A DNA stretch of 64,000 nt from Callorhinchus milii (taxonomy: Eukaryota), in assembly GCF_018977255.1 (NCBI RefSeq), contig NW_024704771.1, forward strand, positions 868,001 to 932,000, read 5' to 3'. The notes beneath the pieces were generated by a model. It saw only the letters and a list, made by a program, of their open reading frames with translations, ran no database searches and had not been told where the DNA came from. Shown here in pieces: positions 330 to 37,200 of this stretch (the stretch's first letter is position 1; each line of letters begins with the position of its first letter). Position numbers and translations under genes: made by a program.

Positions 330-520
330 TGTTTGGTTTAGAGGGTTGTGGGTTGAAGCCCCACATCAGCACCTGAGCTCATAGTTCAGGCTGATACCAC
401 ACTCTGTCACTGAAGGACACTCAGTGTTAGAGGCTGACGTTTGGTGAGACGTGAAAATTGACAGTTTGTACCTGTCTGTTCAGGTGGACATTAAAGATCC
501 CATAAACTGATGGAGAATGT
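330..520 (+). mobile_element. Degenerate SINE (Deu-domain/SacSINE-like core)
   Basis: ggttgaagccccac...ctgttcaggtggacattaaagatccc; homologous to 63240-63430 and to the body of 1255-1440. Confidence 0.55.
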
Positions 521-700
521 AGTGTATTGCAGATTAATTGGCCATTCACTTGATGGTGCAAATGACTGTAACCTTAGCCTTCAAAAGCAGTCACTACAAA
601 TGACTAATTAGGTGTAAAGTACTGAATGTTTTGATTTGATCAATTGTTACAAAAGTTCTGCCTTTGTAATTGTTGATAACACAATGTATTACTGTTACAG

Positions 701-976
701 ACCGCAGACGGCTGCCCTTGATTTCCATGGCAGGTTACCAGGACTCGAGAATTAAACTCACGTGTAAATCAAAAGGCTGGTATCCCGAACCTCGTGTAGT
801 TTGGTTTGATAGGAGTGGAGCAGAGGTGAAAGCCAAGACTGAAACATGCACTCAGAGGTCTGAAGACTGTTGGAAATGTGAAAGTAGTATTGATATAACC
901 AGCGATTCTACAGACAGATTCACGTGTCTGACAAGAAACTTTCTGGAGGAAAACGAGGCAAAGATCCAGGTATCAG
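701..976 (+). CDS. BTN gene A IgC (C2-set) exon
   Basis: ttacag|ACC...TCAG|gtcagt, 276 nt. Encodes [18 protein letters not shown]...FTCL, the typical BTN IgC motif (C..GWYPEP.V.W). Confidence 0.93.
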
Positions 977-9900: not shown

Positions 9901-12900
9901 ACCCAATTTGGGTTGTACAGAAGTTATGCAGGTAAGATATTTAATATCATATAAAGTGTGAAATTCAGAAATCCTTGACAGACCACAGGGTAACAATCTG
10001 TATCTGCCACCTGTCTACCAACCGTGCGATCCTATCAGTGCACTCTCACAGAGGTAGGAAGGAGCAAAGCCGTTGAAGGTGAAGATGAGATTTTTGAACT
10101 CGTTCCTGTGGAGGATGGGGAGTCAGTGGAGCCGGGCGAGGGTGGGGGTGACAGGGTTTGGGAGAGGACACAAGCTGCAGAATTCTGGATGATACCGCTC
10201 CACAAAGACCCTCACACACACAATCTCACCCTCTCCCACAAAAACATACACGGACATCCCCCACACACATCCTCACCTCCCCCTCCACATACACACACCT
10301 TCACCTGCCCCTCAGACACATCCTGACAAACAACAACTTGGATTTGTATAGTGCCCTCCATACCGGATGGCGTCTCAGAGCGCTTCACAGTAACAGATCC
10401 TGGTGTCAAGTGAGGGGGAAGAAGGTGACCAAAGGCACGGTCAAAAAGAAAGGTCTTTAGCCGAGACCTAAAAGCAGGAAGGGAGGGCACAAGGCGAAGG
10501 GAGTGAGGAAGGGAGTTCCAGAGCCTCAGGGCATAGTGGCTGAAGGCACAGCTGCCAATGGTGGAGCGGAGGAATCGGGGGACAAGGAGGAGGCCAGACC
10601 CGGTGAAGCGAAGGCAACGGGCACTGTTGTGAGGAGAGAGGTCAGAAAGGTCGGGGCAGAGGAGTGGAGGGATTCAAAGACAAGATGGAGGGATCTGGGA
10701 CAGGCAGCCAGTGTTGGTGTCAGTGCTGTTAGTGTTAGTGTTGGTGTCAGTGCTGTTAGTGTTAGTGTTGGTGTCAGTGCTGTTAGTGTTAGTGTTGGTG
10801 TTCAGTGCTGTTAGTGTTAGTGTTGGTGTCAGTGCTGTTAGTGTTGGTGTCAGTGCTGTTAGTGTTAGTGTTGGTGTCAGTGCCGTCAGTGTTAGTGTTG
10901 GTGTCAGTGCTGTTAGTGTTAGTGTTGGTGTCAGTGCTGTTAGTGTTAGTGTTGGTGTCAGTGCTGTTAGTGTGAGTGTTGGTGTCAGTGCTGTTAGTGT
11001 TAGTGTTGGTGTCAGTGCTGTTAGTGTTAGTGTTGGTGTCAGTGCTGTTAGTGTGAGTGTTGGTGTCAGTGCTGTTAGTGTTAGTGTTGGTGTCAGTGCT
11101 GTTAGTGTTAGTGTTGGTGTCAGTGCTGTTAGTGTTAGTGTTGGTGTCAGTGCTGTTAGTGTTGGTGATTCTGTGTTAGTTTTGATTGTTTAATTATGAT
11201 GTGAAGCCGACGTCACTTATTGTAACTCTGCGGTTCCCCTGTGACCCCCTCACGTCGCGGCTTTATACCCACTGCTCGGCCTCGGCTCCGCCCCGCGCTC
11301 TCCTGACTCCACTCCACACCCTCACATCCCCCACAAACACAATCACATCCCCCAACAGACACACCCTCAGCCCCCAACACACACGCTGACACACCGCCCC
11401 ACACACACCCACATCCCCCCCACACATAAACACTCACATCCCCCCAACACAGTCTCACATCACCGCAACACACACCCTCACATCCCCTCCACACACACCA
11501 TCACATTCCCCACCACATACCCACTCATATCCCCCGCCACACATACACCCCCTCACATCCCCCTCACACGCACCCTCACAGCCCCCCACACACGCACGCC
11601 CTCACATCCCTCTCTCACACACAACCTCTCCACACAACCTCTCATCCCCCCAAACATACACCCTCACATCCCCACCGCACCTACATCCTCACATTCTCTG
11701 ACCACATACATCCTCACATCCCCCCCTAACACATACACACTCATATCCCCCGCCCACACACACACACCCTCACATCCCCCCACAGACACACACTCTGCCC
11801 CACAAACACACACCCTTGCATCCCCCTCACACACACCGTTACATCTCCCCACATGCACCCTCACATCCCCCTATAAGCACTCTCACATCCTCCCCACACA
11901 CCCACACCTCCCCCACACACTCATACACCCCCCACCACATACACACCCTCATACCACCCCCAGATACACACCGTCACATCCACCCCCAAACACACCATCA
12001 CATCCCCCCAACACAGACTCACACCAACCCCCAAACACACAACCTCACATCTCCCCCCACACAGACACCTTCACATCCGTCCTGAAACACATCATCACAG
12101 ACGCCCCCACACAGCCACAGTCCCCCCACACAGACTTTCACATCCCCCCCACACACAAACACTCACATCCCCCAACACAGTCTCACACCACTCCAACACA
12201 CACCCTCACATCCCCTCCACACATACACACACACACATCACCCACACACACACACACATCACCCACACACACACACACTCATATCTCCCATCCACGCATA
12301 CACACCTTCACATCCCTTCAACTCAGCCTCACACCACCACCCCACACATACACACCCTCACTTCCCCCACATACAAACCCTCACATTCCCCACACACACG
12401 CTAACATTCCCCCCACATGCACCCTCGCATTCCCCCACACGTACCCTCACCCCCCCAACACACACCCTCACACTGCCCCCCTATACACACCCTCACATGG
12501 CACCCCCACATGCACCCTCACATCACCCGCCACACACACCCTCAAATACGCCCACCCAAACAACCCTCACATCCCTCCCACGGACGCACCCTCAGCCCCC
12601 CGATACATACCCTCACACCCCACCCAAATTCACATCCCCCACACACGCTCACATCCTCTCCACACACCCTCACATCCACCCAACACAGACTCACACCAAC
12701 CCCCAAACGCACAACCTCACATTTCCCCCACACACACCTTCACATCCGACCCGAAACAGACCGTCACAGCCCCAAACACTCTGACATTCCCACATACTCA
12801 CACCTTCACCTTCCCCCCCACACACCCTTACGTCCCCCCCTCACACACCCTCACGTCCCCCCCTTCACACACCCTCACATCCCCCCCCACACACACCCAC

Positions 12901-13597
12901 ACATTCCCCCCCACACAAACCCCTCCCCCACAGACACACAGACTCTCAGCCTTTTTGCGGATTCTGTTCCCAGGAGATGTCGATGTTTTACACAAAGGCT
13001 TCTCTCCCGGTGACGACGCTGAAGATCATCTTATTTATGATTGTAAAGGTGTCCGACAATAATGGTCTGATTCTCCCTCCAGTTACAGTCACTCTGGATC
13101 CTGACACAGCCCATCCCCGGCTCATCCTGTCTGAGGACCTGACCAGTGTGAGACGCGGAGACGAACTGCAGTCGCTCCCTGACTCCCCGAAGAGGTTTAG
13201 TAACTATCCCATTGTCCTGGGATCTGAGGGCTTCACATCGGGGAGACATTACTGGGAGGTGCAGGTGGGCAACAAGTCATGGTGGGCTGTGGGATTGGCC
13301 ACAGAGTCTGTCAACAGGAAACAAGCAATCACATTGTCACCAGAGGATGGGGTCTGGGGGGTGAGGCTGGTGGGTGGGGACTGTTATGAGGCTCTGACAT
13401 CACCCCGCACCCGCCTGTCCCTGACAGTGAGACCCGGGAAGGTCGGGGTTTACATGGACTATGAGGAGGGACAGGTGTCATTTTACAACGCTGACAACAT
13501 GTCTCATCTCCACACTTTCACCCAAACTTTCACTGAGAAACTTTATCCTCTGTTCAATCCCTGGTTTGGTTCTGACCCTCTGACAATCTGTCGGTGA
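701..13597 (+). CDS. Butyrophilin-like gene A, 5'-partial gene model (IgC-TM-8 mini-exons-B30.2); signal and IgV exons lie upstream of the window
   Basis: join(701..976,1660..1779,4479..4514,5912..5938,6502..6528,7478..7504,8022..8048,8527..8553,9665..9691,9896..9931,13083..13597). All exons have ag/gt ends and phase 1, and the frame is open to the TGA. The domain order is the canonical BTN architecture. Confidence 0.88.
1255..1440 (+). mobile_element. SINE fragment: tRNA-like head joined to a Deu-like core
   Basis: TAGCTCAGTGGTTAGAGCA A-box, then gtccttcagatgagacgttgaaccgagg...aggtggattttaaagatcc. Confidence 0.6.
1660..1779 (+). CDS. BTN gene A transmembrane exon
   Basis: ttacag|AGG...AAAG|gtaat, 120 nt. 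Encodes [40 protein letters not shown] (hydrophobic helix followed by a basic stop-transfer). Confidence 0.92.
1850..3200 (-). mobile_element. L2-clade LINE fragments (RT C-terminal region)
   Basis: Minus-strand peptides [23 protein letters not shown] and [11 protein letters not shown] match the intact L2 RT at 52641-53978. Confidence 0.85.
3490..4150 (-). mobile_element. L2 fragment, internally deleted tandem duplicate of ~2155-3070
   Basis: Near-identical blocks (e.g. gatctatactgagtt..gaggaaattt.ggctcatccagg); paralogous ORFs at 2877 and 3956. Confidence 0.8.
4479..4514 (+). CDS. BTN gene A cytoplasmic mini-exon 1 (36 nt, [12 protein letters not shown])
   Basis: Polypyrimidine tract + ccag acceptor, gtaagt donor, phase 1-1. 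Confidence 0.8.
5045..5385 (-). mobile_element. L2 3' fragment
   Basis: Minus-strand peptide [26 protein letters not shown]. Confidence 0.75.
5912..5938 (+). CDS. BTN gene A mini-exon 2 (27 nt, DQKYMKKTL)
   Basis: tttcttcctttag acceptor, gtaagt donor, phase 1-1. Confidence 0.8.
6502..6528 (+). CDS. BTN gene A mini-exon 3 (27 nt, ELXKQFTKS; one N base)
   Basis: tttcctttcag acceptor, AG|gtact donor (weaker), 27 nt, phase 1-1. Confidence 0.68.
6963..7274 (-). mobile_element. tRNA-Ala-derived SINE with L2-type tail
   Basis: Reverse complement has an A box, a TGC anticodon loop and a GGTTCAATTCCC B box; tail gaagcgctttgagacgtc...(att)n. Confidence 0.85.
7478..7504 (+). CDS. BTN gene A mini-exon 4 (27 nt, EWEIVGSCK)
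   Basis: ctgtttccttccag acceptor, gtaagt donor, phase 1-1. Confidence 0.75.
7512..7708. repeat. 25-bp tandem repeat (caccccacattacaggctggttata), ~8 copies
   Basis: Direct inspection; it starts immediately after the mini-exon 4 donor. Confidence 0.95.
8022..8048 (+). CDS. BTN gene A mini-exon 5 (27 nt, CCKDLLVGF)
   Basis: gttttctctcag acceptor, gtaaga donor, phase 1-1. Confidence 0.7.
8057..8414 (-). mobile_element. tRNA-derived SINE, same family as 6963-7274
   Basis: ctctaaccactgagctacaggact head on the reverse strand, plus the shared body and tail. Confidence 0.82.
8527..8553 (+). CDS. BTN gene A mini-exon 6 (27 nt, VKSRIHSYA)
   Basis: ttttctttcatttccag acceptor, CAG|gtaaga donor. It ends in ..YA, like the pre-B30.2 exons at 9896 and 39151. 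Confidence 0.8.
9665..9691 (+). CDS. BTN gene A mini-exon 7 (27 nt, GYKEVLTEL)
   Basis: ctttcttacag acceptor, gtaagg donor, phase 1-1. Confidence 0.78.
   Translation, partial: VTRRFSQN
9896..9931 (+). CDS. BTN gene A mini-exon 8 (36 nt, [12 protein letters not shown])
   Basis: cctttattttacag acceptor, CAG|gtaaga donor, in frame with the B30.2 exon. Confidence 0.8.
10040..10710 (-). mobile_element. L2 3'-end fragments, interrupted by C/A-rich sequence
   Basis: Minus-strand peptide [21 protein letters not shown]; tail ...gcactatacaaatccaagttgttg. Confidence 0.75.
10711..11166. repeat. 27-bp tandem repeat (gtgttagtgttggtgtcagtgctgtta), ~17 copies
   Basis: Direct inspection; it produces the spurious (VSAVSVSVG)n ORFs. 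Confidence 0.95.
11290..12930. repeat. C/A-rich degenerate satellite (cacaccctcacatccccc-like) in the last intron of gene A
   Basis: G-poor + strand with a recurring ccctcacatcccc unit; same family as 39200-50110. Confidence 0.92.
13083..13597 (+). CDS. BTN gene A terminal B30.2 (PRY-SPRY) exon
   Basis: ctccctccag acceptor. Encodes [19 protein letters not shown]...[14 protein letters not shown]...[16 protein letters not shown]...FTEKLYPLF, ending in TGA. Confidence 0.96.
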
Positions 13598-14343
13598 CGG
13601 TTAATGAGGAGGAAAATTTGACTATTATTTCCATGAGGTTTGGATAGTGCCGAGTGTTTGATTCTGTACTTCTCTCTCAGGTTTGAGCTGAGTTTGTGAC
13701 GGGAAGTGAAGGACGGGGCTGAGTGGGGTATCCCTGAGAGACGTCAGCTCCACATTGTATCCCGAACCGGGAAAGCCGTCTGTGGTCAGCGACACTGAGC
13801 TGCTGACACTGACACTGTGCCACAACACCGCACCTGCACATTCCAGTGTCAATACAGTAAACCCCGACTTACAGGACTCCGGGTGTCCGGGATACACAAC
13901 TGGACCAACCGGGATCCACAACAAATATAGTTGTAAAATTTCCGTGAGCCCTCCCTGTGCAGCGTCCCACAGGGTCAGCTCTCCTGTCACACTGAGCAGC
14001 CGCACCGTCCTCACTGGCCTTCACGCTCTGAGACAGGGATATATATCGCTGATATCTTTCTCTCCAGCAATGCCCAGTCTCACAGTCGGGGCTGTGCTCA
14101 GAATCTCACTGAAATCTCCCAAATCACTTTTATATCTATAAACAGGTGCCGTGTTGTTCCCCAGTGAGCGGCCGAGTATCACTGTGTATAAACACTGTGT
14201 ATTTTCAGTGACAGCTTTTATAATCCGTAACATTTCTCACTCACTGTAACAATCTTTAACCCTCACTAAACCGAGGTCACGTCTGTGTGGATATTAATAT
14301 CCAAAATATTGTCATTCACTTACAAAATACTCGAACAATTTAC

Positions 14344-14349
14344 AATAAA
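14344..14349 (+). terminator. Candidate polyadenylation signal of gene A
   Basis: AATAAA followed by a T/GT-rich stretch, at the same position in the 3' module as in the copies at 51742 and 59656. Confidence 0.5.
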
Positions 14350-14418
14350 TTTGTTTTGATATTATTTTATGTCGAATGATTGAACACAATCTGCACACAC
14401 TCCTCATTCTCTGATACA

Positions 14419-14700
14419 CACTCTAACCCTCACCCCGATACACACACCCTAACCCTCACCCCGATACACACACCCTTACCCTCACCCCCTGATACACACA
14501 CCCCTAACCCTCACCCCATGATACACACACCATTGACCCTCACCCCGACACACACACACCCCTAACCCTCACCCCCTGACACACACCCCTAACCCTCACC
14601 CCCTGACTCACACACCCCTAACCCTCACCCCCTGATACACACACCCTATCCCTCACCCCCCGATACACATACCCCTAAACCCTCACCCCCTGACACACAC
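14419..14700. repeat. ~29-bp tandem repeat (ccctaaccctcaccccctgatacacacac)
   Basis: About 9 degenerate copies, just past the gene A polyA signal. Confidence 0.85.
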
Positions 14701-15596: not shown

Positions 15597-16678
15597 ACGC
15601 ACTGTGCCCATTACAGATTTGTTTGCAACCAAAGGATCCAATATGGAAGTCGGAGTCCTGTAGCTCAGTGGTTAGAGCACTCGCTTTGCAAGTGAGAGAC
15701 CTGAGTTCAATTCCAGGCAGAGGGCGAAACCTTACTCCACACAGAGCCTAATAATAATCCCTCCAAAACCAAAAACAATAATAAATTGGTCATTTTCAAT
15801 CTATGACTGTTTGTGGGACATTGCTGTCCGCAAATTGGCTGCCACGTTCGCCCACAAATATGCAGTCCATTCACTTTACAGTGTGTTCTGTGAAGCGCTT
15901 TGGGACGTCTTCCCGACGTGAAAAGCGCTATATCAAATGCAAGTATTTTTTATTATTAATGGAGACTTCAGTGGTAGCATTGACAAACCATTTAACATGC
16001 CATAAGCACTGTGTGTACACCTTAAGCAAAACTGCCATACATGTGCGACGGGTCATAGCTCATGAACGAAAGAAGATCGTATCTAAGCTATGCCAAACAA
16101 CGTGGTTTACAGTGTGATCCAGTAGGTCCTCGAGTTACTGCAAGACTTCCATGTAGACGATACTTGCAGTTTTTCCTTCTCCAGCCATGATGTACAGGAT
16201 TTGAGATCATACCTTTCTGTGTCGAAGTCCAACTGTGTTGTTCTTTGCTCTTCAGTTTCGTTTAATTCGCCTTCTCTCTTTTCATAGGATTTTTATTTGT
16301 CCTTGAAAGGCTTGATCTTTGCTTCCGCATCTTTAATATTAAGAAAATTATTGGGAGGACTCCTGTTGAGAGGAATGAGTGAGAAGACTCAGTGGGAAGA
16401 GTCCTTGTTCGGAGGACTCCTGTGGGAGGACTCCTTGTTGGGAGGACTCCTTTTGCTACTTTATTGCAGAATATAGAATGGTGTGTGATTTTGTTGCAGA
16501 ATACTGTGCATACCGCATATTTTGGTGCTTAAGCTCATCAACAACAGGAGATCCCCGAAAAAAATATGCCCATGACACTCCACACTGCAAGAACTTTCCA
16601 ATGAGGTATAAATCATGTTAATCGGTTGTTGTGTTTTTAGCAGACAAACAGACAGACCTTTTTCTATATTAGTTCAGA
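15597..16678 (-). mobile_element. Non-autonomous Helitron-like element, interrupted by a SINE
   Basis: The reverse complement begins TCTGAACTAATA and shares blocks with 33154-33712 (gtatggcag..ttgcttaagg; ttccatattggatcctttggttgcaa) on both sides of the SINE. Confidence 0.6.
15652..15958 (+). mobile_element. Full-length tRNA-Ala(TGC)-derived SINE with L2-like tail
   Basis: GTCCTGTAGCTCAGTGGTTAGAGCA-CTCGC-TTTGCAA-GTGAG-...GAGTTCAATTCC; the 3' end gaagcgctttgggacgtcttcccgacgtgaaaagcgctatat matches the L2 3' end at ~54060-54105. Confidence 0.88.
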
Positions 16679-16823: not shown

Positions 16824-18106
16824 CAGGCCTTGGGGTGCGCTGATGATGGGGCAGTCGGGGTGGCTGCTCTGGGACAATCATTGACAAGTGTTTTGTGCTC
16901 TGGGTGGAGGAGGCCCAGGGCTGGAGCAGAGGGAAGTTTCTGGAAGGGCCCTGGATAGAGAGCAGACGAGGAGGGTGACAGGAGACAAGAACTGATTGTT
17001 ATAATAATTCTTACATTTGATATAGCACTTTATCACATCTTCCAGATGTCCCAAAGGGCTTCAGACAATATTGTGTAAAGTGAATTGACTGTATTTTGAG
17101 GGCAAAACGTGGCAACCAATTGCACAGAGGTGTTCCACAGTCATGGATTCAGTGACCAAATTCTTTTTTAAGGGATTATTCCCCCCAGAATGCGATTAAA
17201 ACTGGTTCCTATTGACTGCTTGGTAAACAGAGGCGTGTGCAGTAAGGAAAGTTGCCTCAGGTTTCTCCCCACTCGGGTATCGAACACGTGCTCGACAAGA
17301 GCTCAATCTGATATGTAATGTAGAGACAGAGAGAGAGAATAATAGTAACAATAAACCATACATTTGATATAACCACTTAACACTTATTCAACACATCTCA
17401 AAGGGCTTCACAGGATACACTCTAAAGCGAATGTGACTGTATATTTTGTGGGCAAAGCGCAGCAGCCGATTGTGCACAGCAGTGTCCCCACAAACAGCCA
17501 TGGATTGAAGCAACTAAATTATTATTGTTGTTGTAGGGATTAATTCCCCCGGAAAAGTGACCCGGCAATCGACGAACAACTGAGTGAAGTGAGAGAGAGG
17601 GAGTGAGAGAGAGTCAGAGAGAGGGAGTGAGAGTCAGAGAGAGAGCGAGTGAGAGAAAGAGTCAGAGAGAGAAGGAGGGAGTGAGAAAGAGGGCGGGGCA
17701 GGGAGGGCGGGGAAGGAGATGACAGGAAACAGGTAATAAACAGTAACTTGTTGACTTTCCTGTTGTTTCGGGGGAAATGACTGGTTCCTTCCTGTGCACC
17801 GGAAGCTGTCAATGCACAACCCAACCGGGACCTGGCGCTTTGTGTCCGAATTAACCGGTGTCCAACGTTACCCGAATACCGCGGCCGCCATTGTGTGCTG
17901 TTATATCCCGCGGTGACGCTGTGTCACCAACGGGTGGCGCTGCCTCGTGTGGTATGTGGTTCGATGCCGCGGTGACGCTGTGTCACCAACAGGTGGCGCT
18001 GCAGCCACTCCGCACTGTCAGTGATACACCGCCACCATCACAGAGATAGGGCGCTTTCACCCGCGCAGTGCATTGTGGCTCCCGGGCACCGCCATTGCTG
18101 CTGTTC
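16824..18106. repeat. Left arm of an inverted segmental duplication (partner 26507-27960)
   Basis: Reverse-complement match covers unique sequence, SINE remnants, the GA microsatellite and the CpG island, with scattered substitutions and indels. Confidence 0.9.
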
Positions 18107-18340
18107 CTTCTGCTCAGTGTCAGCGACACAAACCCCCGCACAGGCGGCGCTTCCTCTCGTCCCCGTCTCACCCCCTCCCTCTGGGGAAATGTCATCATTG
18201 TTATTATTATTACCTTCTGATCCGGGCCCAGGGGGAGGGTCACAGCCACAAACCTCCCAAACAAGTGGCTTCTGCTGATCTCTGGGTCTGGACACAGCCC
18301 CAAAGCTGAGAGTGGCAGCAGTTTGTGGGAGTGAGCGGTG
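17780..18340 (+). promoter_or_regulatory. CpG-island promoter/5' region of the TRIM pseudogene
   Basis: High CpG density, YY1-like GCCGCCATT, ETS-like CCGGAAG and two CTCF-like motifs, directly upstream of TRIM exon 1. Confidence 0.55.
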
Positions 18341-18949
18341 GAGGGGACACGGCTGCAGAGAGCAGCACCGGAGCTCAGCGGAGGGTCTCACTTGCCCCGT
18401 TTGCCCGGACCTGGTCAAGGGTCCGGTTTCTCTGGTTTGCGGCCACAGCTTCTGCCGCTCGTGTCTCGCAGGGCTTTGGGAGAGGCCGGAGGCTCACTCC
18501 TGCCCGGAGTGGCGCCAGGTGTGTCCGGGAGGGGAGCTGAGAGCAGGTCGACCAATGGATAATTTGGCTGAAAAAGCTCAAAATCTCAGTCTGGATCCGA
18601 AACGGGGAGAAAGGGAACACCGTTGTGACGATCATCGGGAAGAGCTGAAGCTGTTCTGTGAGACGGATAAGAAATTGATCTGTGAGATGTGTCTCATTTA
18701 TGCTGAGGAACAGAATCACAAATCACTCAGTGATGTCCATAGACAAAGCTGCTGAGATCTACAAAGGTACACAAGGAGCGGACTTTATAATGTGACTGCA
18801 ATTCTCTCTCTCTTTCTTGAGCCGAGTGTCTGACACACACGGAAACTATTGCTGTGTTTAAGAGAATCCAAAGCAGGTGGTGATTGAGATATAAGGGAGA
18901 AACTATTTCCACTGGTGGGTGGGTCGTAACCCGAGGATTTATAACAGTT

Positions 18950-19207
18950 AAAAGAAACAGAGGAGAGGTTTTTCCGCACAGCGTTTTTAGTGTCTGGAAT
19001 GCATTGCCTGAAAGGATGGAAGAAGCCGATTCAATAACAACTTTCAAGAGAGAAGCAGATAATTATTTGGGGAGGACAAGTTTGCAGGGCTATGGGGAGA
19101 GAGCGGGGGAGTGGGAGTGATTGGGAAAGCTCTTCTCAAAGAGCCGACACAGACACAATGTACCAAAAGGCCTCCTTCTGTGCTGTATAATTCTATGATT
19201 CTATGAT
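18950..19207 (+). mobile_element. CR1 LINE 3' end
   Basis: RT C-terminus VFSVWNALPERMEEADSITTFKRE, CR1-type 3'UTR and (attctatg)n tail. Confidence 0.8.
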
Positions 19208-19644
19208 ATGTTAACTGCACATGGAATATTGACCTGTGTCCCCGGAGGGACGCACTCTGTTTACAAATCTGTTGACAATTTGACACAGGCCGACAAGAGC
19301 CAAGGCTTGTGTATCCCAGAGTATAAGTCGGGGTATCTATTGAAGTTTAACCAACTAAACGGCATAACCGGCCATTGAGAGCGCTATCTGTCAGACTTCC
19401 CGCTGTGTGTTCTCTCTGGTCACATTGACACAGTTAACAATGTGTTTGTTTTGGTTAATTTCCATTTTGATTACAGGAGAAACTGAAATCGTATTTCAAC
19501 TTGGGTCTGAAGAGAAAGGATGTTGTTTTTCGAGCTTAGTTTGGGCAAAAAGAGAAGATTTCTGCCTTGAAAGTAAGTTGCGTGTGATAAGAGTCAGCAC
19601 TCTCACCTCTGAGCCAGAAGATTGTGGAATCCATCCCCACTACG

Positions 19645-19965
19645 GGCTGTCAGTCGTGTCTCTCTCTTTACTGTGTGATGTCTGGGCTCTCAGTCATGTC
19701 TCTCTATTTACCGTGTGATGTCTGGACTCTCAGTCATGTCTCTCTATTCACCGTGTGATGTCTGGGCTCAGTCGTGTTTCTCTATTTACCGTGTGATGTC
19801 TGGGCTCAGTCGTGTCTCTCTCTTTACCGTGTGATGTCTGGGCTCAGTCCTGTCTCTCTCTTTACCGTGTGATGTCTGGGGTCTCAGACGTGTCTCTCTC
19901 TTTACTGCGTGATGTCTGGAGTCTCAGTCGTGTCTCTCTCTTTAACGTGTCCCGTTGTGATGTCT
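19645..19965. repeat. 38-40-bp tandem repeat (ccgtgtgatgtctgggctcagtcgtgtctctctcttta), ~8 copies
   Basis: Unit starts at 19751, 19789, 19827 and 19865; the array ends just before the TRIM exon 3 acceptor. Confidence 0.92.
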
Positions 19966-20859
19966 GACGCCTCACTTTACAGGAACAGGCGAGGAGTCTG
20001 CAGAACGACGTCAGGGCTGAGTTTGCCGAAATGCACCAGAGCCTCAGTGACACGGAGCAGTGTGTAATGCGAGAGCTCAGAGAGTGAGAGGAGGAAATGT
20101 TATAGGGTTTGAAGAGGCGTTAAAATCTATAGACCCAGAATTAGTAACGTTACAGCGGCAAATAGATGAACAGGTCATGGGGTCCTTTCTGAGGGTAAGA
20201 AAAGGAGATTGTTATTATTTATGTAATAATAGTCCTTACATTTTATACAGCGCCTTTAATTTCCTTTTAATGTCTTAAAGTGATTCACAGTAAAATGTAG
20301 TGACTGTGTATTTTATAGACAAACACAACAACCAATTTGCACAGAAAGTGCCCCACAAACAGCAATGAAGTGAATGAGCAATTGTTTTTGGGAGTAACTC
20401 CCTTCACGTTTCCAGTCGTGTCCGGGATCTTTATCGTCCACCTGAACAGGCGCAACACCACAGGTTAACGTGTCATCCAAAGGACAGCCCTCAGCTCTGC
20501 AAAACTAACAACGTAACAGAGCTCAGCCCTTACACTTCCCTACAAAACACACAGTCACTACACTTTACGGTGAATCCAGTGAAGTGTTTGAGACGTCCTC
20601 CCAATGTGAAAGGCTCTGTACCAAATGCAAAGCTCCTTCTTCTCACCTTGTGTAAAGCTCCCTGAGCGAGTCACCGTGTGGAGATTGTTCCGCACGCGGA
20701 GGGTTAGCTGCTGTGACTCTGACCTCTCGGTGTTTGTTTCATTTCAGGAGGAAGATTCTCGGAAGATCAGGTCTGACGTTCTCTTCAAACAAACTGTTTC
20801 ACTCATTAATGTCAAAGCAGTAACCACGGGATCCACTCTGCTGCCTGTGCCCTTTCTAC

Positions 20860-21190
20860 TGCCACCCCCTCCCCAGCTCCCTGTGTCCCCGACCGGCCCC
20901 ACCCATCCCTCCCTCACTTTTAATGGCCTCCAAGACCTTGATCCTCCTGACCTCAGTGACCTATTAACACTATACCAACCTGTCTGCTCCACCTGCTCCA
21001 TGTCCACAGCCCTACCCACCCCACCACTGGTGGTCGGGGTCTCTGCTTTTCTGCTCCAGCTTCTGGAACTCCAAACCAGAACCCCCCATCTCCCTCCTCA
21101 CCTGTTTGTGTGCAATGAAGTGTTTTGGTACGACCATCTAACGTGAAAGCTCTTTATGAGTGTAAATTGTATAACAAGAATCATAATAAT
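20860..21190 (+). mobile_element. L2 3' fragment
   Basis: cccctccccagctccctgt...gatcctcctgacctcagtgacc; L2/SINE-type tail at ~21140-21190. Confidence 0.6.
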
Positions 21191-21739
21191 AATAATAATC
21201 CTTACAACTGGAATAGCAGCTTTCACTACGGGATGACATCCCGGGATACACTGCAGTGACTGTGTATTTTGTGGGAGAACAAAACACATTGTGTCGTATT
21301 ACTCTTAAGGTAAAATCTTGTGACGTTCTTTGAGATATTTCGATGGTGTGATTTAGCCCGACATCAAAAACAAGGGTTATTATGGTCTGGGCGGGAGCGA
21401 GATGTATCCAGGGGTGATGGGGTTACATTTTATAGGCCGCTTCTCTGGAAAGTGGGAAATTTGGGTGCGTGTCAATCTGCCGAGCTTGGCAGCGTGATCT
21501 TGTCTGAGGTTTTCACCTTTACTTGGCAATGGCATTGCGGGTAAAGTGGTGTGTTCAGCCAAGATACGGAAATATACAAATTGGGTAAATGTGGGGATAA
21601 TTGCAAGTTGTGTAAAGTGTGAAAATTGCACAAATGCACACCGTCGCATTACATAATTGTTTGAATGAGGAACCGACTGGAGAAACCATATCAATGAATC
21701 ACCTAATTCACTACAAATGTCACTGACAGTGCTTTCAGC

Positions 21740-23544
21740 CACTGTGCCCCGAAGCTCTGGATTCCCTCCCTCAATCCCTCCGCCCATTGCCCCCTCCCTC
21801 CACACTTTCAAATCCCATCCAAAGACCTTACATTTTGATTGTGTTCACTGTCACCTCTCCCCTCCCTCTACCCCTGGATCGGGGTCAGACTCCACCTCTG
21901 TCAAGCGCTCTGGGACGCTGCCCCGCGTGAAGGACGCGATATAAATGCAAGTTGTTGAATATAAACTCCAGTCTAATAAGTGGAGACATTGCTATATGGG
22001 GCAGTGCTGCCGCCATCTGGTGGTGACAAGATGAACGGCAGTGGGTTCCAGGACCAACATCTGTCACTGAAGCACTCGCCCAGTCAGTCATCGGGTCCTT
22101 TTCCATGTGGTTTAACGATTCTTTTCACCTCTGTTGTTTCAGACACTCTTCTAAGGGCTTTACTAACGGTTCGACTATTTCTCTTCGACTTGTTTTATAT
22201 TCTCCCTTCATCAGTCCTCTATCACCTGACAGTATTTCTCTACAATGTTGTCAGTCTCCGAATGTTTGCATTTTTCTGGTGTTGGTGGACACAAAGTGCA
22301 GACAGTGGGAAAGGTAAGATTGAAGCCGGACAAAGCCAAACCCCCATGACGGTGGGGATGAGAGTAGAGACAATGATAGACAGCATCAGCTCAGGTAAAC
22401 GTCTCACATCTTCTGATGTTTAAAATGTGAATGATGTACATTTACTGATGCAAAAGCTGACAGTCTGTCATGAACAAGGAATGTCTCTGAGGGATTCTGC
22501 CTGAATATGACAAAGCTGTGCATCAGCCCGGCTCAGTCTGTAACACTCACACCCACACCAGGACTTTCAGCTCACAGTCTTCAGTGACCCTCTGGTACAG
22601 AGCTGAGGGAGTTAATATAAGGTCCTCTCTGTGCCTATTCAGGTGAATATAAAGATCTCACACTACTAATGAATAGAGAACTGTCTCTGTTACAAGAATC
22701 AAATCACTAAAGCTGGTCTGTCAGGGCTGACAGATTCTCCCATTCTGTCCTGAGGAGCAGTCCCTGTCCACACACGGTCTGTGCCCCAACCGCACTCCCG
22801 CCTGCAACTGTCCTGCTCCTCGAGCCCCTCACTCCTCTTTGTGTAATGTTTCTGTCTCTCTCAGCTCCGGCCTCTCCGACTCTGGATCCTGATACCAGGA
22901 CTCTGAGTATTTGGAATTCAGAGCGAGGAAGATTGGGATCGACACAAAATAAGTTTTGAAAAGGTTTCCGTGGGCCTTCGCTGTGTATCCTCCCGTGGGC
23001 TCCCCTCTCCTGTCACACTGAGCAGCCTCACCATCCTCACTGGCCGTCACAGGGGCCGGGGATACCCACTGTCACTCAGATTGTTTGAATCACTGATACA
23101 CTATCTCCTGTTCCTGGGATTCAAACAATTACAAATTATTGGTGTTTTGCAATAAAGCAGTAAATGCCGGGACCGACATTGGAATGACACTCAGCTGGAA
23201 ATTCCGTCTCTCCAGACGGGATCTCCCCCATTGGTCCGGCCTCGAGCCGGGGGTTCAGTGTAATGAGCCACTGTAGCCGCCAGACAGCACAATCAGCACC
23301 AGCACCGCAACAGCTCGTCTGGATTAACATCATTCAGAGCATCAGAGGAACCTGACACCCAATGTGTGGGAGCAAAACGTGAGCCATCTTTGTAAAGCTC
23401 ATCGCCAGCTCATCTCTGTGCTCGTGTTGGGAGAATCTGACTTGCCATCCAGTGTGTGAGCTCACACGCTCTGAGACAGGGATATATATCGCTGATATCT
23501 TTCTCTCCAGCAATGCCCAGTCTCATAGTCGGGGCTGTGCTCAG
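21740..23544 (+). repeat. Segmental duplication unit (L2 tail + TRIM 3' exons + 3'UTR module); partner ~57585-59380
   Basis: Colinear high similarity, e.g. paralogous ORFs 21980/57947, 22829/58686 and 23136/58977. Confidence 0.92.
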
Positions 23545-24310
23545 CATAAGAGAGAGAATCCATCTTACTGCAATTATCAATGCAACGAGCATTATGATTT
23601 GAACAATTGTGATAAAAGCCGTAACAGAGAGTGCTGTCCAGCATTGCAAACTGTCTGCCATCATCTGGGTGTTCCATCCAAATGTTGGCTTGAGTGGTTC
23701 AGCCCCAGGTGGTCCTGTTGTAAGATGTTCAGATGTTTCTGTGAGGTGAATTCCCAGCCCAGTGTAGCCCGCAAGTTTGTGGATGGCAAACGGATATGAT
23801 GTCCGAAGTGGGCGATTGCCTCCAATTCCTCTCGGTATAGGTCCGAGTAAAGCTACACACGAGTGGAGTTACGTATGATGAAGGGATAGAGAATTTGTTC
23901 CCCAATCTGTACTTCGAAATGTAGGGTAAAGCATCCCATAGGCCTGGTCAGGGGGCAATTTTATCTGCCATACTGGAAGGAAGTTTCAGTGGTGACATAA
24001 CAATAAACAGCTTGACCGCGGTATATGTACTCGGTACAAACCCAATGGGAAGTCAGAGAAAGTTGGCATCAAGATGACACTTGTCTAATCATGATGCCGC
24101 AGGTGGATATCTTCCGTGGGGTGGGGCAGGCCCATTTCTGCTGCTTTAAAACACAATCGGTAAGGTCGACCCCTTACCGGGTATCATATACAATGGTAAC
24201 AAAACCAGGTGCAGTTATATACTGTACCCAATGGCCCTGCCTGATTGCTCCTAAAGGATGGAGTTGGTACAGTGTCTCCCTGTCCCTGTTCACTGGCACC
24301 ATTCTCACCC
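23545..24310 (-). pseudogene. Decayed retroviral env-like fragment (TM-subunit ectodomain + transmembrane helix), foamy/class-III-like cysteine pattern
   Basis: Manual minus-strand translation: VPVNRDRETLYQLHPLGAIRQGHWVQYITAPGFV..DLTDCVLKQQKWACPTPRKISTCG..CQL..YCYVTTETSFQYG.NCPL..GCF..VQIG; then, after a frameshift, WTALSVTAFITIVQIIMLVALIIAVRWIL. It carries several in-frame stops. Family assignment is by motif recall only. Confidence 0.55.
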
Positions 24311-25370
24311 CTTCAAAAACAGCCATTGTCACTCCTATCCTTAAAATCCCTCTCGGATCTCAAATTACCTTTCCATCTCCAACCTGCTTTTCCATTCCAA
24401 TGTCCTGGAATGAGTTTTTGCTACCCTGTGTCACTCTCTCCGCTCCCGCCACTCCCTTCGCGAGTACCCCCAATCAGGTTTCTGTGCTGCCCACAGCGCA
24501 GAAACAGCTTTGCTGAAAGTGAATAATGTCATTTTGTCCATCTGTGTCCAGGGCTCCCTCTGCCTCCTTCTCCTCCATGACCTCTCTGCTGTCTTTCAAA
24601 CTGTTGACTGCTCTATCCTTTTGTACCACCTCCCCAGTCACCACACTTGCACTGGCTGCCTGTCCCAGAGAGGATCAACTTCAAGATCCTCACTCTTGTC
24701 TTCAAATCCCTCCACTCCTCTGCACCCCCCGACCTCTCTGACCTCCTCTCTCCTCACAGCAGTGCCCATTGCCTTCGTTCCAAGGAGGGTCTGGCCTACT
24801 CCTTGTCCCCTGAGCCCTCCTCTCCACCCTCGGTGGCTGTGCCTTCAGCCACTATGCCCTGAGACCCTGGAACTCCCTTCCTCACTTCCTTTGCCTCGAC
24901 CCCTCTCTTCCTATTTTCAGATCTCGGCTGAAGACTTTTCTTTTTGACCACGCCTTTGGTCACCTTCCTTCCCCTCCCCCCGGCTCATCACCGGGATCCG
25001 TTTCTTTGTAGTGCTCTGAGACGCCGTCCGGTGTGGAGGCCGCCATATAAATTCAAGTTGTTGTTGTTGAGTCCTACTTGACTAAACTGCCACAATCTCC
25101 CTCTGGAAACTGGTTCTCCTCACCTGTGGGGTACTCCAAGGCTCCATTATTGGCCCCTTTCTTTTATCACTGACACGTTCCGTCTCAGATATGGGGTCGA
25201 CTTCCACATATATGCGGATGACACCCAAATCTACTTTCTTCCTCCAGAATGCCCTGAGGCTCTGGAACTCTATCCCCCCAATCCCTCTTCCTTGCCCTCT
25301 CGCTCAATTTCAAATCCCACCTAAAGGCATTCCTTTTTGATTGTGCTTACAGTCACCTCTCCCCTTCGCT
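24310..25370 (+). mobile_element. L2 fragments
   Basis: FKTAIVTPILK, QGSLCLLLLHDLSAVFQTVD, LHWLPVPERINFKILTLVFK and (ttg)n tail at ~25060; a further fragment with YADDTQ at ~25210. Confidence 0.82.
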
Positions 25371-25902
25371 TCGGGTGGGACCTCTACACACAATCTAATA
25401 CTTTCCCAAATGAGGTGTCCCTCCAGGGAGAGAGTCTGCATTCCAACAATCTCTCTCTGGGGTTTCTATGTGCAGAGGGGATGTGTGGGATCCTCAGATT
25501 GGTTTGGATACTCTCAAGTACGGTGATGGTTGGGGCCAATAGAACATTGTGGAAATATTTGCCCCAAATTGTGGGCTTTTAACTGAGCACATTTTGGATA
25601 AAAGTGCGAGGAGTTGATTGATGTTATTGAGAGGTACATTTTACTGCTAAACTATAATTTTTCACGTCATTGATTAGCAATTAAACATAAAGAAATATCA
25701 CAGATTAGATTGTTGTACAATCAATTATTAATGTTTTCTTTAATATAAACTGCGGGAACGACACAGCGCAGCGCGAAGGGCTGAATGGCGGTTTCCACTC
25801 CGCGCTCCGTGTGAAGGCCTCAAAACAACAGCTTTGCTCACAAAGCTCATCAGTGTCCTGACTGTGGATTACAGGGGGTCACCACCTCCTCTCTCTCAGG
25901 GT

Positions 25903-26331
25903 NNNNNNNNNNNNNNNNNNNNNNNNNNNNNNNNNNNNNNNNNNNNNNNNNNNNNNNNNNNNNNNNNNNNNNNNNNNNNNNNNNNNNNNNNNNNNNNNNN
26001 NNNNNNNNNNNNNNNNNNNNNNNNNNNNNNNNNNNNNNNNNNNNNNNNNNNNNNNNNNNNNNNNNNNNNNNNNNNNNNNNNNNNNNNNNNNNNNNNNNNN
26101 NNNNNNNNNNNNNNNNNNNNNNNNNNNNNNNNNNNNNNNNNNNNNNNNNNNNNNNNNNNNNNNNNNNNNNNNNNNNNNNNNNNNNNNNNNNNNNNNNNNN
26201 NNNNNNNNNNNNNNNNNNNNNNNNNNNNNNNNNNNNNNNNNNNNNNNNNNNNNNNNNNNNNNNNNNNNNNNNNNNNNNNNNNNNNNNNNNNNNNNNNNNN
26301 NNNNNNNNNNNNNNNNNNNNNNNNNNNNNNN
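25903..26331. other. Assembly gap (429 N)
   Basis: Run of N. Confidence 1.
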
Positions 26332-26506
26332 CTCAGAGACTCACACACACAGAGACTAACACACACACACAATCAAATACACAGATTCACACCCACAGAA
26401 ACACACACCCACACACTCACAGACTCACTCACACACACTCATGCACATATACACACAGACATACACTCACAGACAGAAACACACACAGTGTTGCTGACAC
26501 TGACCT

Positions 26507-27960
26507 GAACAGCAGCAATGGCGGTGCCCGGGAGCCACAATGCACTGCGCGGGTGAAAGCGCCCTATCACTGTGTGATGGTGGCGGTGTATCACTGACAG
26601 TGCGGAGTGGCTGCAGCGCCACCTGTTGGTGACACAGCGTCACCGCGGCATCTAACTACATAACGCACGAGGCAGCGCCACCCGTTGGTGACACAGCGTC
26701 ACCGCAGGATATAACAGCACACAATGGCGGCCGCGGTATTCGGGTAACGTTGGACACCGGTTAATTCGGACACAAAGCGCCAGGTCCCTGTTGGGTTGTG
26801 CTGTGAACCGGTTTCCATCCGACGGCTGTCAATCAGCGAAGGGGGCGGGAGGAACGGGACAGAAACGAGGGCGGGGCCGGAGAGGGGAGGAGTCACCACC
26901 ACACATTGATTGACAGGAGCTCCGGGCGGCCAATCAGCAGCCAGAGCGGGGGGGGGGGGGGATTGACAGCTTCCGGTGCACAGGAAGGAACCCGTCATTT
27001 CCCCCAAAACAACAGGAAAGTCAACAAGTTACTGTTTATTACCTGTTTCCTGTCATCTCCTTCCCCGCCCTCCCTGCCCTCTCTGTCCCGCCCTCTTTCT
27101 CACTCCCTCCTTCTCTCTCTGACCCTTTCTCTCACTCACTCTCTATCTCTGACTCTCACTCCCTCTCTCTGTCTCTCTCTCACTCCCTCTCTCTCACTTC
27201 ACTCAGTTGTTCGTCGATTGCCGGGTCACTTTTCCGGGGGAACTAATCCCTACAACAACAATAATAATTTAGTTGCTTCAATCCATGGCTGTTTGTGGGG
27301 ACACTGCTGTGCACAATTGGCTGCTGCTCTTTGCCCACAAAACATACAGTCACTTACGCTTTAGAGTGTATCCTGTGAAGCCCTTTGAGATGTGTTGAAT
27401 AAGTGTTAAGTCGCTATATCAAATGCAAAGATTATTGTTACTATTATTCTCTCTCTCTGTCTCTACATTACATATCTTACGAGCTCTTGTCGCGCACGTG
27501 TTCGATACCCAAGTGGGGAGAAACCTTAGGCAACTTTCCTTACTTCACACGCCTCTGTTTACCAAGCAGTCATTAGGAACCAGTTTTAGGCGCATTCTGG
27601 GGTGAATAGTCCCTTTAAAAAAGAATTTGGACACTGTTTGTGCGATACCTCTGTGTGCAATTGGTTGCCACATTTCAACCACAAAATAACACAGTCAATT
27701 CATTTTACACAATATTGTGTGAAGCCCTTTGGGACGTCTGAAAGATGTGATAAAGTGCTATATCAAATGCAAGAATTATAATTACATTCAGTTCTTGTCT
27801 CCTGTCACCCTCCTCACCTGCTCTCTATCCGGGGCCCTTCCACAGACTTCCCTCTGCTCCAGCCCTGGGCCTCCTCCACCCGGAGCACCGCAACACTTGT
27901 CAATGGTTGTCCCAGAGCAGCCACCCCGACTGCCCCATCATCAGCGCACCCCAAGGCCTG
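26507..27960. repeat. Right arm of the inverted segmental duplication (partner 16824-18106), including a CpG-island promoter facing the gap
   Basis: Reverse complement of the left arm, with an extra ~150-bp GC-box/CCAAT block (~26800-26960) that the left arm lacks. Confidence 0.9.
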
Positions 27961-34243: not shown

Positions 34244-37200
34244 GTAAGGAAACACATTGAATCTGTTTGATTTCTGTTGGTGTAAATTGCTGAAGATAAA
34301 GGTAAATGATGTGCACAGACTGGTTGCCGCCTTCCCTCCACAAAATACACAGTCGCAGCACTTCACAGTCTATCCTATGAAGATTTTGAGACTTCTCGGC
34401 GACGTGATAATCATAGAATAATCAGAAAATCATAGAATTATACAGCACAAAAGGAGGCCATTCAGCCCAGTAGGCCAACTCTTTTAAAAGTGCCATCCAA
34501 ATCAATCCCAATCCCTTGCTCTTTCCTCATAGCCGCGCAAACCTGTCCTTCACAAATAATTATTTATAAGGTGCTATATCAAATGTAAGGATTATTATTG
34601 TTATCTCAGCAACAGTCTATTGACAGAGTTTGTCTGAGGCAGTGACTGAAAATCCTATCTGTATCCATTGTTTATTATTAAGCAGAGAAATTCACAGTCA
34701 CTGGCCCGGCCCTCCCTGTCCCAGCCATTGCTGGTTCAGATGTTGTCCTGGACTGTAAGTGTTCCATAGACCTGCCACGAGAGGGTGTGGAGGTGAGATG
34801 GTTCAGGACAAGATACGACTCCCCTGTGCACTTATACAAGGAGGGGCGACAGCAACTGGAAACACAGGATGAAGCCTACAGACACAGAACACAACTGTTT
34901 GTAGAGGAATTTATCAACGGCGATGTGTCTCTCAGACTGGGAGATGTGCGGGTGTCAGATAATGGAGCGTACACGTGTTTTGTTGACTATGCCGGATGGT
35001 ATGAAGAGGCAGTGATAGAGTTGAAAGTTATAGGTCAGTAATGTTTATAATTCATTTTATTTCATGTAATCTGTGTGTACAAACATTCATTATTTGTTAA
35101 TGTTATCTTCAAAATGCAATACTTTATAAAAACAAGAACAAGTTATCATTGGTGTAAATGTATTCAGAATGTTGTGGCCTTCAGTAAAGTTACTGCTCTG
35201 TAATGTCCCGGGTATTAATATTGTCTGATTCACGTCTCCTGTCTTCCAGTTCTTGGCAGTCAGCCTTGGATTCACGTTGATGGGCAGCACAGTGATGGTG
35301 TGAGGCTGCGGTGTGAATCCAGTGGATGGTTCCCAGCACCAGAGGTTCTGTGGTTTGATGATCAGGGAAACAACTTAACAACACTCAGTAACTGGACGGT
35401 CAGAGAGGATTCTAAAGGTCTCTTCAGTGTTAAAGGCCAAATAGAAATCATCCATTCAACCAATAAGATCAGGTGTCTGATTCACAATTCAGAAAATGAA
35501 CAAGAAGGCAAACTCCAAATCTCAGGTCAGTAAGTACACTGAAATATTAACAATAGACTGATAGATATGATGCAGATTTGTACAGCACATGAAGTGAAAA
35601 CGATCAGTCTGGATGATACGGTCCACCTGATTTCATCCTTTCAAAATACCAAACTCACCATCTTCAACAACAGCAACAAATGACATTTGTGAAGTGCCTT
35701 TCATGTCAGGAGGACATCCAGTGTGAGAGGCACTATGCAAAGGTGGTGGACAATCAGGGATTTGGACCCACCTGGGGATTGGGGTCAACATGTGGATGGA
35801 GTTTCACAGAATTGGGGCAGAAGTATGGAGTTAGTAGGCCACAGAGATAGGGAGAAGCCGGGCCATGGAGGGCTTTGAAGGCAATGAACCTATTCATTAC
35901 AACAACAAGATTACATTTGTATAGCACAAATGTAATTTGTTTTACTTGACAATAAAGGTTTGAGATTCATCCAGAAATCACATTTGTAAACTGAAATAGA
36001 TAGATATTAGGAATGATTTCCTTTCCTCTGGCATGGTAATTCTCATTCAAAAATGCTGCCGTTACTTCTTCTCAATAAACTTTCACTAAACTCTTTACAA
36101 ACAGGGCTGCTGCCCCATTTCCAACCTGCCCTTCCTCTCCAAGGTGCTGGAATGAGTTGTCGCCTTGAAGTTCAATTCCTTCCTTTCCCACTATTCCCTG
36201 TATAAGTCTTTCCAAACTGCTTCCTGCTGCTCACAGCATCATTACAGCCCTGGCCAAAGGCACAGGTGATGTTCTCTCTGTCTTTGACCAGGAGACCCTG
36301 TGTCTACTTGTCCTTCTCTATCTCTCGCTCACCTTTCACACTGTTGACCACTTCTCCTCCGTGAATCACCTCACAGATTCTGCACATTATTGGTTTCACT
36401 CCTGTCTGTCCCAGCATCTCCATGTTATCTTATTCAATGGCTTCTCCTCCTGCCCAGTGTATTCACAGATGGTGTTCCTCTCCTTTTCCTTATCCACACA
36501 TTCACCCTTGGAGTCTGGCTCTCAGGGACCGGACTAACGAGACAGCCACAAAGAATGGATTTTATTCTGACATTCCCTTACCAACCACATCACTTTGGTG
36601 CCACTTCAGCTCCAAGACTCCATTTATCTCCTGGGAAAAGTATATGAAAATAATAATCCTTGTATTTGATACTGTATGTTATCATGTATTTGAGATGTCT
36701 CAAAGCCCTTCACAGAATATACTGTAAAGTGAAATGAATGTATATTTTGTGGGTGAGACGCGGCAGCCAATTGCAGACAGCAGTGTCCCACAAACAGTCA
36801 CGGATTGAGTGATCAAATTATTATTATTCTATTGTATTATTTGATGGGATTATTAGCTCTGGAAAGCGATCTACCAATCAATGAACAAGCGGGTTCCTAC
36901 TTACTGCTGGGTAAGCAGAGGCATGTGGAGTTTAAACATTAAACTTGTCTAATGTTTCGTTCTGCCCCGGAATCTAACCCGAATCTTCTCGCACTACACT
37001 ACCAGGACTTCACTTGGAGTGAAGCCTGTGACAGCTACTGAGCTACTGTGTGTAACACAGTCACATGGGGACAAATAAAGGTATTTGTGTTTGACATCAG
37101 AATAGATGTTTAAATGTCTATTTACATTTCTTGACAGACGAGTTCTTTCCCAAAGTGCCAGTGGGTTTGGTGGTTTCCGCACTGCTCTTAGGACTTGCCA

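Follow-up and report, generated by a model that had tools for sequence, protein, structure and literature searches.

How does the start of a TRIM exon come to be joined to sequence that otherwise lies behind the stop codons of butyrophilin genes? The question is raised by a small unit within a 64,000-nucleotide stretch of the genome of the elephant shark, Callorhinchus milii, which we refer to as the window (coordinates 1-64,000). The window appears to correspond to positions ~868001-932000 of MU249860.1 in assembly GCA_018977255.1, because our comparison locus L006 (MU249860.1:915154-921771) matches window 47154-53771 at 100%. The RING and B30.2 exons of the window have identical or almost identical counterparts among predicted C. 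milii proteins. Pfam and homology searches placed three plus-strand genes in it, butyrophilin A, TRIM-a and butyrophilin B; the unit, which we call copy T (21737-23547), lies downstream of the TRIM-a exons. B30.2 is the ligand-sensing domain of antiviral TRIMs and of the butyrophilins (BTN) that signal to gamma-delta T cells. We consider copy T to be, probably, the dead relic of a chimeric B30.2 last exon, with the 5' side of a vanished TRIM gene (TRIM-b) and the tail of a butyrophilin, which arose by exchange, then deletion, and then duplication. The relic has no function of its own and is a neutral leftover in a pseudogene setting.

We compared the window with loci L001-L007, so that ~235 kb of the genome was sampled in total: ~140 kb of the BTN/TRIM cluster and 93 kb of other TRIM loci outside it. 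One of these loci, L004, begins at MU249860.1:1006560-1014141 (L004 1-7582), and its positions 7583-8320, which face the run of N in the window, were masked in sequence-level analyses. The sample contained eight TRIM-type B30.2 exons (two in L001, three in L007 and one each in L002, L003 and L004) and three BTN-type B30.2 exons (genes A and B in the window, and A0 in L005). From 5' to 3', the relic is made up as follows; X, Z and Y are our names for the successive blocks of the tail.

22371-22864, plus strand: what remains (the 3' part) of a TRIM-type intron 5, interrupted in the middle by a small repeat insert; its source, TRIM-b, is a second TRIM that is lost apart from the relic
22865-22895, plus strand: the stub, the initial 31 nt of a TRIM-type B30.2 (PRY) exon, phase 1, APASPTLDPDT
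22896-23050, plus strand: block X, homologous to gene A 13872-14024 and 95-99% identical to the other stub copies
23051-23464, plus strand: block Z, with AATAAA at 23151, found in all five stub copies
23465-23547, plus strand: the first 83 nt only of block Y, 97.6% identical to gene A 14022-14104 and to its gene B counterpart

A preliminary description of this DNA had read the stub as the start of a PRY domain, beginning APASPTLDPDT, and the comparison agrees: a good splice acceptor (...tctctcag) ends at 22864, exon-like sequence in phase 1 follows from 22865, and the 47 nt from 22849 to 22895 are 85-95% identical to the starts of eight TRIM-type B30.2 exons (E 1e-9 to 1e-15). Acceptor and start motif are thus homologous to those of known B30.2 exons. 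The resemblance continues upstream, with the acceptor, ~45 nt of intron and the 31-nt stub aligning at 85-95% with the TRIM B30.2 exons of L002, L003, L004 and L007. The intron remnant upstream of the stub (~490 bp) is itself TRIM-type; its last ~45 nt and the acceptor align with the L002, L003 and L004 TRIMs, and at the opposite end of 22371-22864 the initial 115 nt match intron 5 of those three genes in colinear order (nhmmer E 5e-5 to 1e-3). With the BTN-type exons of A and B, the stub has in common only a 17-nt core, ACTCTGGATCCTGAYAC, in which 22879-22895 matches the exon starts at 13091-13107 (gene A) and 50268-50284 (gene B) at 16 of 17 nt, while the intron and the first 9 nt differ. 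Both types of B30.2 exon are in phase 1. The full PRY/SPRY exon (~170-180 aa) is absent from the relic, where 10 codons (APASPTLDPDT) are left, and only genes A and B returned a full B30.2 exon when the window was searched with tblastn. A chance match to TLDPDT was considered and ruled out, because the homology to TRIM exons spans 47 nt and extends into the intron.

Directly after the stub, at the junction of GATCCTGATAC and CAGGACTC, block X is entered from 22893/22896. In gene A this block begins 278 nt past the stop codon. Homology of block X between relic and gene A was detected by nhmmer (E 7e-18); positions 22935-23050 of copy T are 79.5% identical to gene A 13911-14024 over 117 nt (E 1e-22), and a second copy of the relic in the window (copy D, 58737-58892) is 73.7% identical to gene A 13872-14024 over 156 nt, the match starting exactly at the junction, CAGGACTCCGGGT. 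A jump from the stub into sequence that follows the gene A stop codon, near 13870, had been noticed from the letters of the stretch, and block X at 13872-14024 is where it lands. Expressed in gene A coordinates, the stretch missing from the relic is 13108-13872, or ~765 bp, and it is flanked by imperfect direct repeats, CCTGACACAG in the exon and CCCGACTTACAG just 5' of X. A deletion between these repeats fits the junction, as had been suggested in the form of a ~760 bp loss with short microhomology. At the far end of the relic, 23424-23547 is 97.6% identical to gene B 51380-51502. Copy T then breaks off within Y at 23547, with unrelated sequence beyond, and Pfam gave no match on the sequence 3' of this break. 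With its TRIM-type 5' side and BTN-associated tail, the relic is, judged by its sequence, a recombinant.

The entire unit 21737-23547, with the stub and its 1.1 kb of upstream sequence, recurs at 57578-59387 with 95.9% identity, and three more copies lie nearby on the same scaffold. The five stub copies are T (stub at window 22865), D (stub at window 58706), T' and T2 (both in L004) and D0 (L005). The two parts of copy D are listed here.

57578-58705, plus strand: fragment of the TRIM-a flank and the TRIM-type intron remnant of copy D, 95.9% identical to 21737-22864
58706-59944, plus strand: tail of copy D, with the stub at 58706-58736, X at 58737-58892, Z at 58893-59304 and a full Y at 59305-59944

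The stub-X junction is identical in T, T', T2 and D and differs by a single substitution in D0; between the units, identity is 96-99%. Since five copies have one junction in common, we conclude that the junction arose once and was then spread by segmental duplication. Copy T' belongs to a second TRIM pseudogene with relic, 74 kb past the window end, in which L004 1-7582 matches window 18321-25902 at 99.66%; the pair stems from a very recent duplication, or else one member is a retained haplotig. Like its counterpart in the window, this L004 segment runs into an assembly gap. In copy D0, X and Z resemble those of D, and Y resembles that of gene A.

The origin of the tail is traced through genes A and B, whose relevant features are given below (u1 denotes the gene A post-stop segment).

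670-981, plus strand: gene A IgC domain (Pfam, C2-set)
1632-1778, plus strand: gene A transmembrane (TM) exon, by homology with P0274
13083-13594, plus strand: gene A BTN-type B30.2 exon, phase 1, stop codon at 13592-13594 (Pfam PRY and SPRY)
13595-13871, plus strand: gene A u1, of which only the first 34 nt are common with gene B
13872-14450, plus strand: gene A X and Y (X 13872-14024, Y 14022-14450, AATAAA at 14344), followed by a 29-nt tandem array
34682-35038, plus strand: gene B IgV domain (Pfam, V-set)
35219-35530, plus strand: gene B IgC domain (Pfam, BTN-type C2-set)
50260-50768, plus strand: gene B BTN-type B30.2 exon (Pfam), encoding P0272 at 100% identity
50922-51376, plus strand: 23-nt C/A-rich minisatellite in gene B, replacing u1, X and most of Z (Tandem Repeats Finder and self-BLAST)
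51380-52029, plus strand: last 41 nt of Z, and Y, in gene B (AATAAA at 51663 and 51742)

Both genes carry Ig domains and a B30.2 exon in order on one strand, as expected of butyrophilins, and gene A also has a TM exon; the paralogue model P0274, which unites TM, heptad exons and B30.2, maps onto gene A. RefSeq splits the butyrophilins of the cluster (seen at window 1-1249 and 62532-63996 and at L005 1-4384) into an Ig-only model and a TM plus B30.2, or B30.2-only, model. A further butyrophilin copy starts at the right end of the window.

The tail blocks form a mosaic over these genes, as had been described for A, B and 58706-59660, and self-BLAST bore it out. Gene A has X and Y and is without the 414-bp Z, the gap being bordered on either side by TCAC microhomology. 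In gene B the end of Z is followed by Y, and A0 likewise has only the last 41 nt of Z, while 58737-59944 has X, Z and Y. Block Y follows all three BTN-type exons, and an AATAAA is conserved at Y+322 in genes A and B; the blocks probably represent transcribed 3' untranslated region (3'UTR) of butyrophilins. None of u1, X, Z and Y was found after any of the eight TRIM-type B30.2 exons or anywhere in the 93 kb outside the cluster. The claim of a common 3'UTR for the terminal exons of TRIMs and BTNs consequently stands for the chimeric relic only, and not for the eight TRIM-type exons.

Large C/A-rich, strand-biased minisatellites are also present. Arrays with the 23-nt unit CACACCCTCACATCCCCCACACA lie at window 11315-12922, 39203-40150, 41798-50100 and 50922-51376, and similar ones at window 14416-14700 (29-nt unit), L001 17321-17923 and L003 21700-24032. 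They occupy the intron just 5' of BTN-type B30.2 exons and, in gene B, the post-stop region as well. One array extends over 8.3 kb with a GC skew of ~ -0.8. The arrays result in spurious long 'PHTHT' open reading frames (ORFs).

We also asked of the same distribution whether X, Y and Z might be pieces of a dispersed transposable element (TE), inserted independently 3' of different genes, an alternative that the preliminary description had itself named. The region is rich in fragments of short and long interspersed elements (SINEs and LINEs), and there is a repeat fragment within the intron remnant, as such an origin might lead one to expect. Within the cluster, however, the blocks occur only directly 3' of a B30.2 exon or stub, in constant order and on a constant strand, and no other copy was present in the 93 kb of other TRIM loci or in the rest of the ~140 kb cluster. 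X/Z/Y showed no terminal inverted repeats and no target-site duplication. Their ORFs gave no Pfam match and no TE protein domain, Rfam returned only a sub-threshold chance match with no tRNA-like or SINE head, and the minus-strand ORF of Y had no counterpart among predicted proteins. We give this explanation almost no credence: as far as our sample reaches, X/Z/Y do not appear to be a dispersed transposon.

Exchange between the two families is visible in the coding part of the B30.2 exons. Over the core of the exon (gene A 13091-13561), A and B are 93.8% identical to each other, and either is 92-94% identical to the intact TRIM of L004, 91% to that of L002 and 80-89% to the other TRIMs. The two exon types, BTN and TRIM, have different introns and also diverge in the first ~20 nt, in the last ~30 nt and by a 15-nt indel, so that the part they share is the coding core only. 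The B30.2 tree with TRIM paralogues that had been proposed as a check was run by maximum likelihood, and it left the BTN exons unseparated from TRIM_L004 and TRIM_L002 (support 84/89) and nested among the TRIM exons. One TRIM exon is listed here.

L004 24987-25519: mosaic B30.2 exon of the intact L004 TRIM, ending two codons before the BTN exons (TGT>TGA)

At sites that separate TRIM_L002 from BTN_B, this exon is L002-like and BTN-like in a ratio of 6:0 in its first 80 nt, 9:10 in the middle and 2:21 in its last 165 nt (Fisher p=5.9e-5), and its 3' part carries the derived BTN-type 15-nt deletion, which is absent from the other aligned TRIMs. The intact L004 TRIM exon is a TRIM/BTN mosaic, TRIM-like on its 5' side and BTN-like on its 3' side. 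We conclude that exchange of B30.2 exon sequence between TRIM and BTN genes is real in this cluster, and that the L004 exon is the living counterpart of the relic. The relic had been proposed as a local footprint of such exchange; the L004 mosaic upholds the exchange, and the stub-X-Z-Y copies themselves record one event propagated to five places, which did not happen locally in the TRIM at 18.3 kb.

The tree bears on the direction of transfer as well. X-Z-Y might first have been the tail of a TRIM-b-type gene, with the butyrophilins capturing the B30.2 exon and tail together, and the nesting of BTN exons in the TRIM clade would suit this order of events, as would the age of the relic's X (75% identity to gene A) and the fact that the relic has the fullest X-Z-Y. 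Apart from the relic, however, X/Z/Y follow 0 of 8 TRIM-type exons, and BTN/TRIM similarity is confined to the coding core. We regard this reverse direction as rather improbable.

Our preferred history, in which a TRIM exon received a butyrophilin tail, would run through four steps, whose order and number, like the direction of transfer, we infer. First, non-allelic homologous recombination (NAHR) or gene conversion within B30.2 coding sequence of 90-94% identity would have given the TRIM-b exon a BTN-type 3' part, tail included. Second, a ~765-bp deletion between the imperfect repeats at the two edges would have removed the remaining B30.2 and the first ~280 nt of post-stop sequence. Third, segmental duplication would have copied the relic with its flanks to at least five places, and fourth, block Y may have been homogenised further among the copies. 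Lineage-specific losses would account for the rest of the mosaic: that of Z from gene A, and the replacement of u1, X and most of Z by minisatellite in gene B and A0.

The first two steps might instead have been one. A single deletion or unequal crossover could have joined codon ~10 of the TRIM-b B30.2 exon to the post-stop region of a downstream butyrophilin on the same strand, with no full-length chimera at any time. In the cluster, genes of the two families alternate along one strand, there is microhomology at the junction, and a full-length intermediate was not found in the sample, all of which speak for a single event. On the present data the outcome of one step is the same as that of two, and the mosaic, intact L004 TRIM shows that homologous exchange inside the exon occurs, which makes the intermediate plausible. 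We think the one-step route unlikely, if not strikingly so.

Several observations weigh against the exchange, deletion and duplication that we favour. Among the exons sampled, none combines a TRIM-type start with a complete B30.2 and X-Z-Y, and the two-step route is accordingly a putative one. The BTN-like tract of the L004 exon ends near the stop codon, short of X/Z/Y. Identity between gene A and the relics is ~75% in X, while Y is 93-98% identical among all copies; X and Y have different histories, and our model needs an added later conversion, Y being either homogenised by conversion or constrained. At 99.66% identity, T and T' might be two alleles and not paralogues. Finally, the sampled share of the genome (~235 kb) is small.

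The preliminary description had assigned the stub to the TRIM gene at 18.3 kb, our TRIM-a, and the structure of that gene decides the matter.

18349-18766, plus strand: TRIM-a pseudo-exon 1 (RING and B-box), from a zinc-binding-protein-A33-like TRIM (Pfam)
19477-19572, plus strand: TRIM-a exon 2, 96 nt, coiled coil (tblastn with P0151 aa 141-172, 84%)
19974-20204, plus strand: TRIM-a exon 3, coiled coil, ends approximate and middle unaligned (tblastn with P0151 aa 170-200 and 221-250)
20748-20770, plus strand: TRIM-a exon 4, 23 nt; a near-identical exon with identical splice-site flanks is present in L001 and L004
21102-21103, plus strand: point at which the 3' end of TRIM-a, from exon 5 through intron 5 to the B30.2 exon, was deleted (synteny with L001 and T2)
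21102-22370, plus strand: TRIM-a downstream flank, 83% identical to and colinear with L001 15693-16969
21737-21963, plus strand: old repeat fragment within the TRIM-a flank, the left end of D-type copies

Of the domains of a class IV TRIM (RING, B-box, coiled coil, B30.2), RING and B-box were recognised by Pfam on 18279-18752 (zf-C3HC4_4 1e-11, zf-B_box 1e-7). The reading frame is not intact: compared with L001, the ATG has become ACG, a 1-nt deletion comes directly behind it, and 2 nt are deleted near the end of exon 1. These lesions are not sequencing errors, because all three are common to T and T2; the last RING Cys is changed to Trp in copy T only. TRIM-a is colinear with the L001 paralogue through exons 1-4 (18217-20991 corresponding to L001 9867-12521, and within it 19843-20991 to L001 11305-12521), after which 21102-22370 corresponds to L001 15693-16969, which in L001 lies downstream of the B30.2 exon. 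In T2 (L004 12712-13965), exon 5 and intron 5 survive together with the cognate B30.2 exon of TRIM-a, which is L001a-like and broken by a 338-bp internal deletion; T2 also holds the stub, 2.2 kb beyond this remnant. From the synteny with L001 and T2, we conclude that the last two exons of TRIM-a were deleted at 21102/21103 and that the stub comes from a vanished TRIM-b. TRIM-a is a pseudogene independent of the relic, its own B30.2 exon lost by a separate deletion.

The stub was therefore not the terminal exon of the TRIM at 18.3 kb. An account in which it is that exon, with an old shared 3'UTR and an internal deletion of B30.2, could appeal to its position on the same strand, 4 kb 3' of the TRIM exons, and to its TRIM-type acceptor in phase 1. 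It is met by the fact that the site of the cognate exons 5-6, 21102/21103, lies 1.76 kb upstream of the stub, with both remnants present in T2; by an intron of the L002/L003/L004 subtype at the stub, TRIM-a and its own remnant being L001a-like; and by the lack of X/Z/Y after the eight TRIM-type exons. We hold this account to be very improbable.

Separately, we looked at the stub as an alternative last exon, lacking B30.2, of the butyrophilin upstream of copy D. This was rejected on two grounds: the frame after the junction varies between copies, and stub plus X is no better conserved than its flanks.

Sharing of B30.2 between the two families has been proposed before. Henry, Vernet, Pontarotti and colleagues are said to have suggested in the 1990s that BTN gained B30.2 by exon shuffling, and sharing between TRIMs and BTNs has so far been argued mostly from protein trees. 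The present cluster, in a basal jawed vertebrate, gives nucleotide-level evidence in the form of family-specific flanks round a 90-94% identical core, an intact TRIM exon that is half BTN-like, and a fossil junction, and it offers a handy natural case for dating and measuring B30.2 exchange. It is a new, holocephalan example of an already known process at nucleotide resolution and leaves the accepted picture unchanged. A recent survey lists C. milii butyrophilins without discussing exchange with TRIMs (PMC12841164).

In zebrafish, finTRIM and NLR genes have been found to share B30.2 by exon shuffling (van der Aa et al. 2009, PMC2657112). As there, a single-exon B30.2 moves here between unrelated families of innate immunity, both exons being in phase 1 with cores 84-94% identical. 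Unlike the zebrafish case, which was read from protein trees, the C. milii cluster shows, at the DNA level, a mosaic within an intact TRIM exon and a fossil junction, while each family still has its own introns and exon ends; this points to gene conversion or NAHR more than to a one-off capture. In the chicken BG region, hybrid genes homologous to butyrophilin have 5' parts and 3'UTRs with independent histories (Salomonsen et al. 2014, PMC4046983), explained by unequal crossing-over or by deletion, including deletions between short direct repeats (PMC4046983). Tandem immune genes on one strand, independent 5' and 3' histories and short-repeat deletions recur in our cluster. In contrast to BG, where exchange is among BG genes only and without B30.2, the TRIM-BTN border is crossed here, and the product is a dead relic. 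In its start loss, frameshifts, internal deletions and copied lesion, the locus resembles ordinary unitary or duplicated pseudogenes in segmental duplications; it departs from them in that the relic unites two gene families and so records recombination.

A broader idea, which we put forward tentatively and with more doubt than conviction, is that the B30.2 last exons of BTN and of one TRIM subfamily form a single exchanging pool, maintained by non-allelic gene conversion, with shared ligand-binding surfaces and Y as a conserved anchor or regulatory element. If so, membrane BTNs and cytosolic TRIMs would have ligand-binding surfaces in common, and Y would promote the exchanges or survive them.

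The region also presents annotation problems, among them a chimeric RefSeq model, the split BTN models and the possible retained haplotig. The chimera is XP_042200689.1 (P0154; L004 10001-25515), which combines T2 pseudo-exon 1 with the middle part of the RING exon of the next TRIM, an intact one. The sequence upstream of TRIM-a has an inverted duplicate (16824-18129 vs 26488-27960, 92-95%) that runs into a run of N at 25903-26331, at which a further inverted TRIM copy may start. In L001, an HSP70 gene (3472-5376) adjoins a tail-to-tail TRIM pair, and an orphan B30.2 3' fragment lies on the minus strand at L002 7276-7509, upstream of another TRIM. LINE reverse-transcriptase ORFs were seen in the window at 52536-53975 (plus strand), 41012-41725 (minus strand), 2-4 kb and 28-29 kb, together with many SINE-like repeats, such as a family at 6963-7274, 15652-15958 and 61367-61617.

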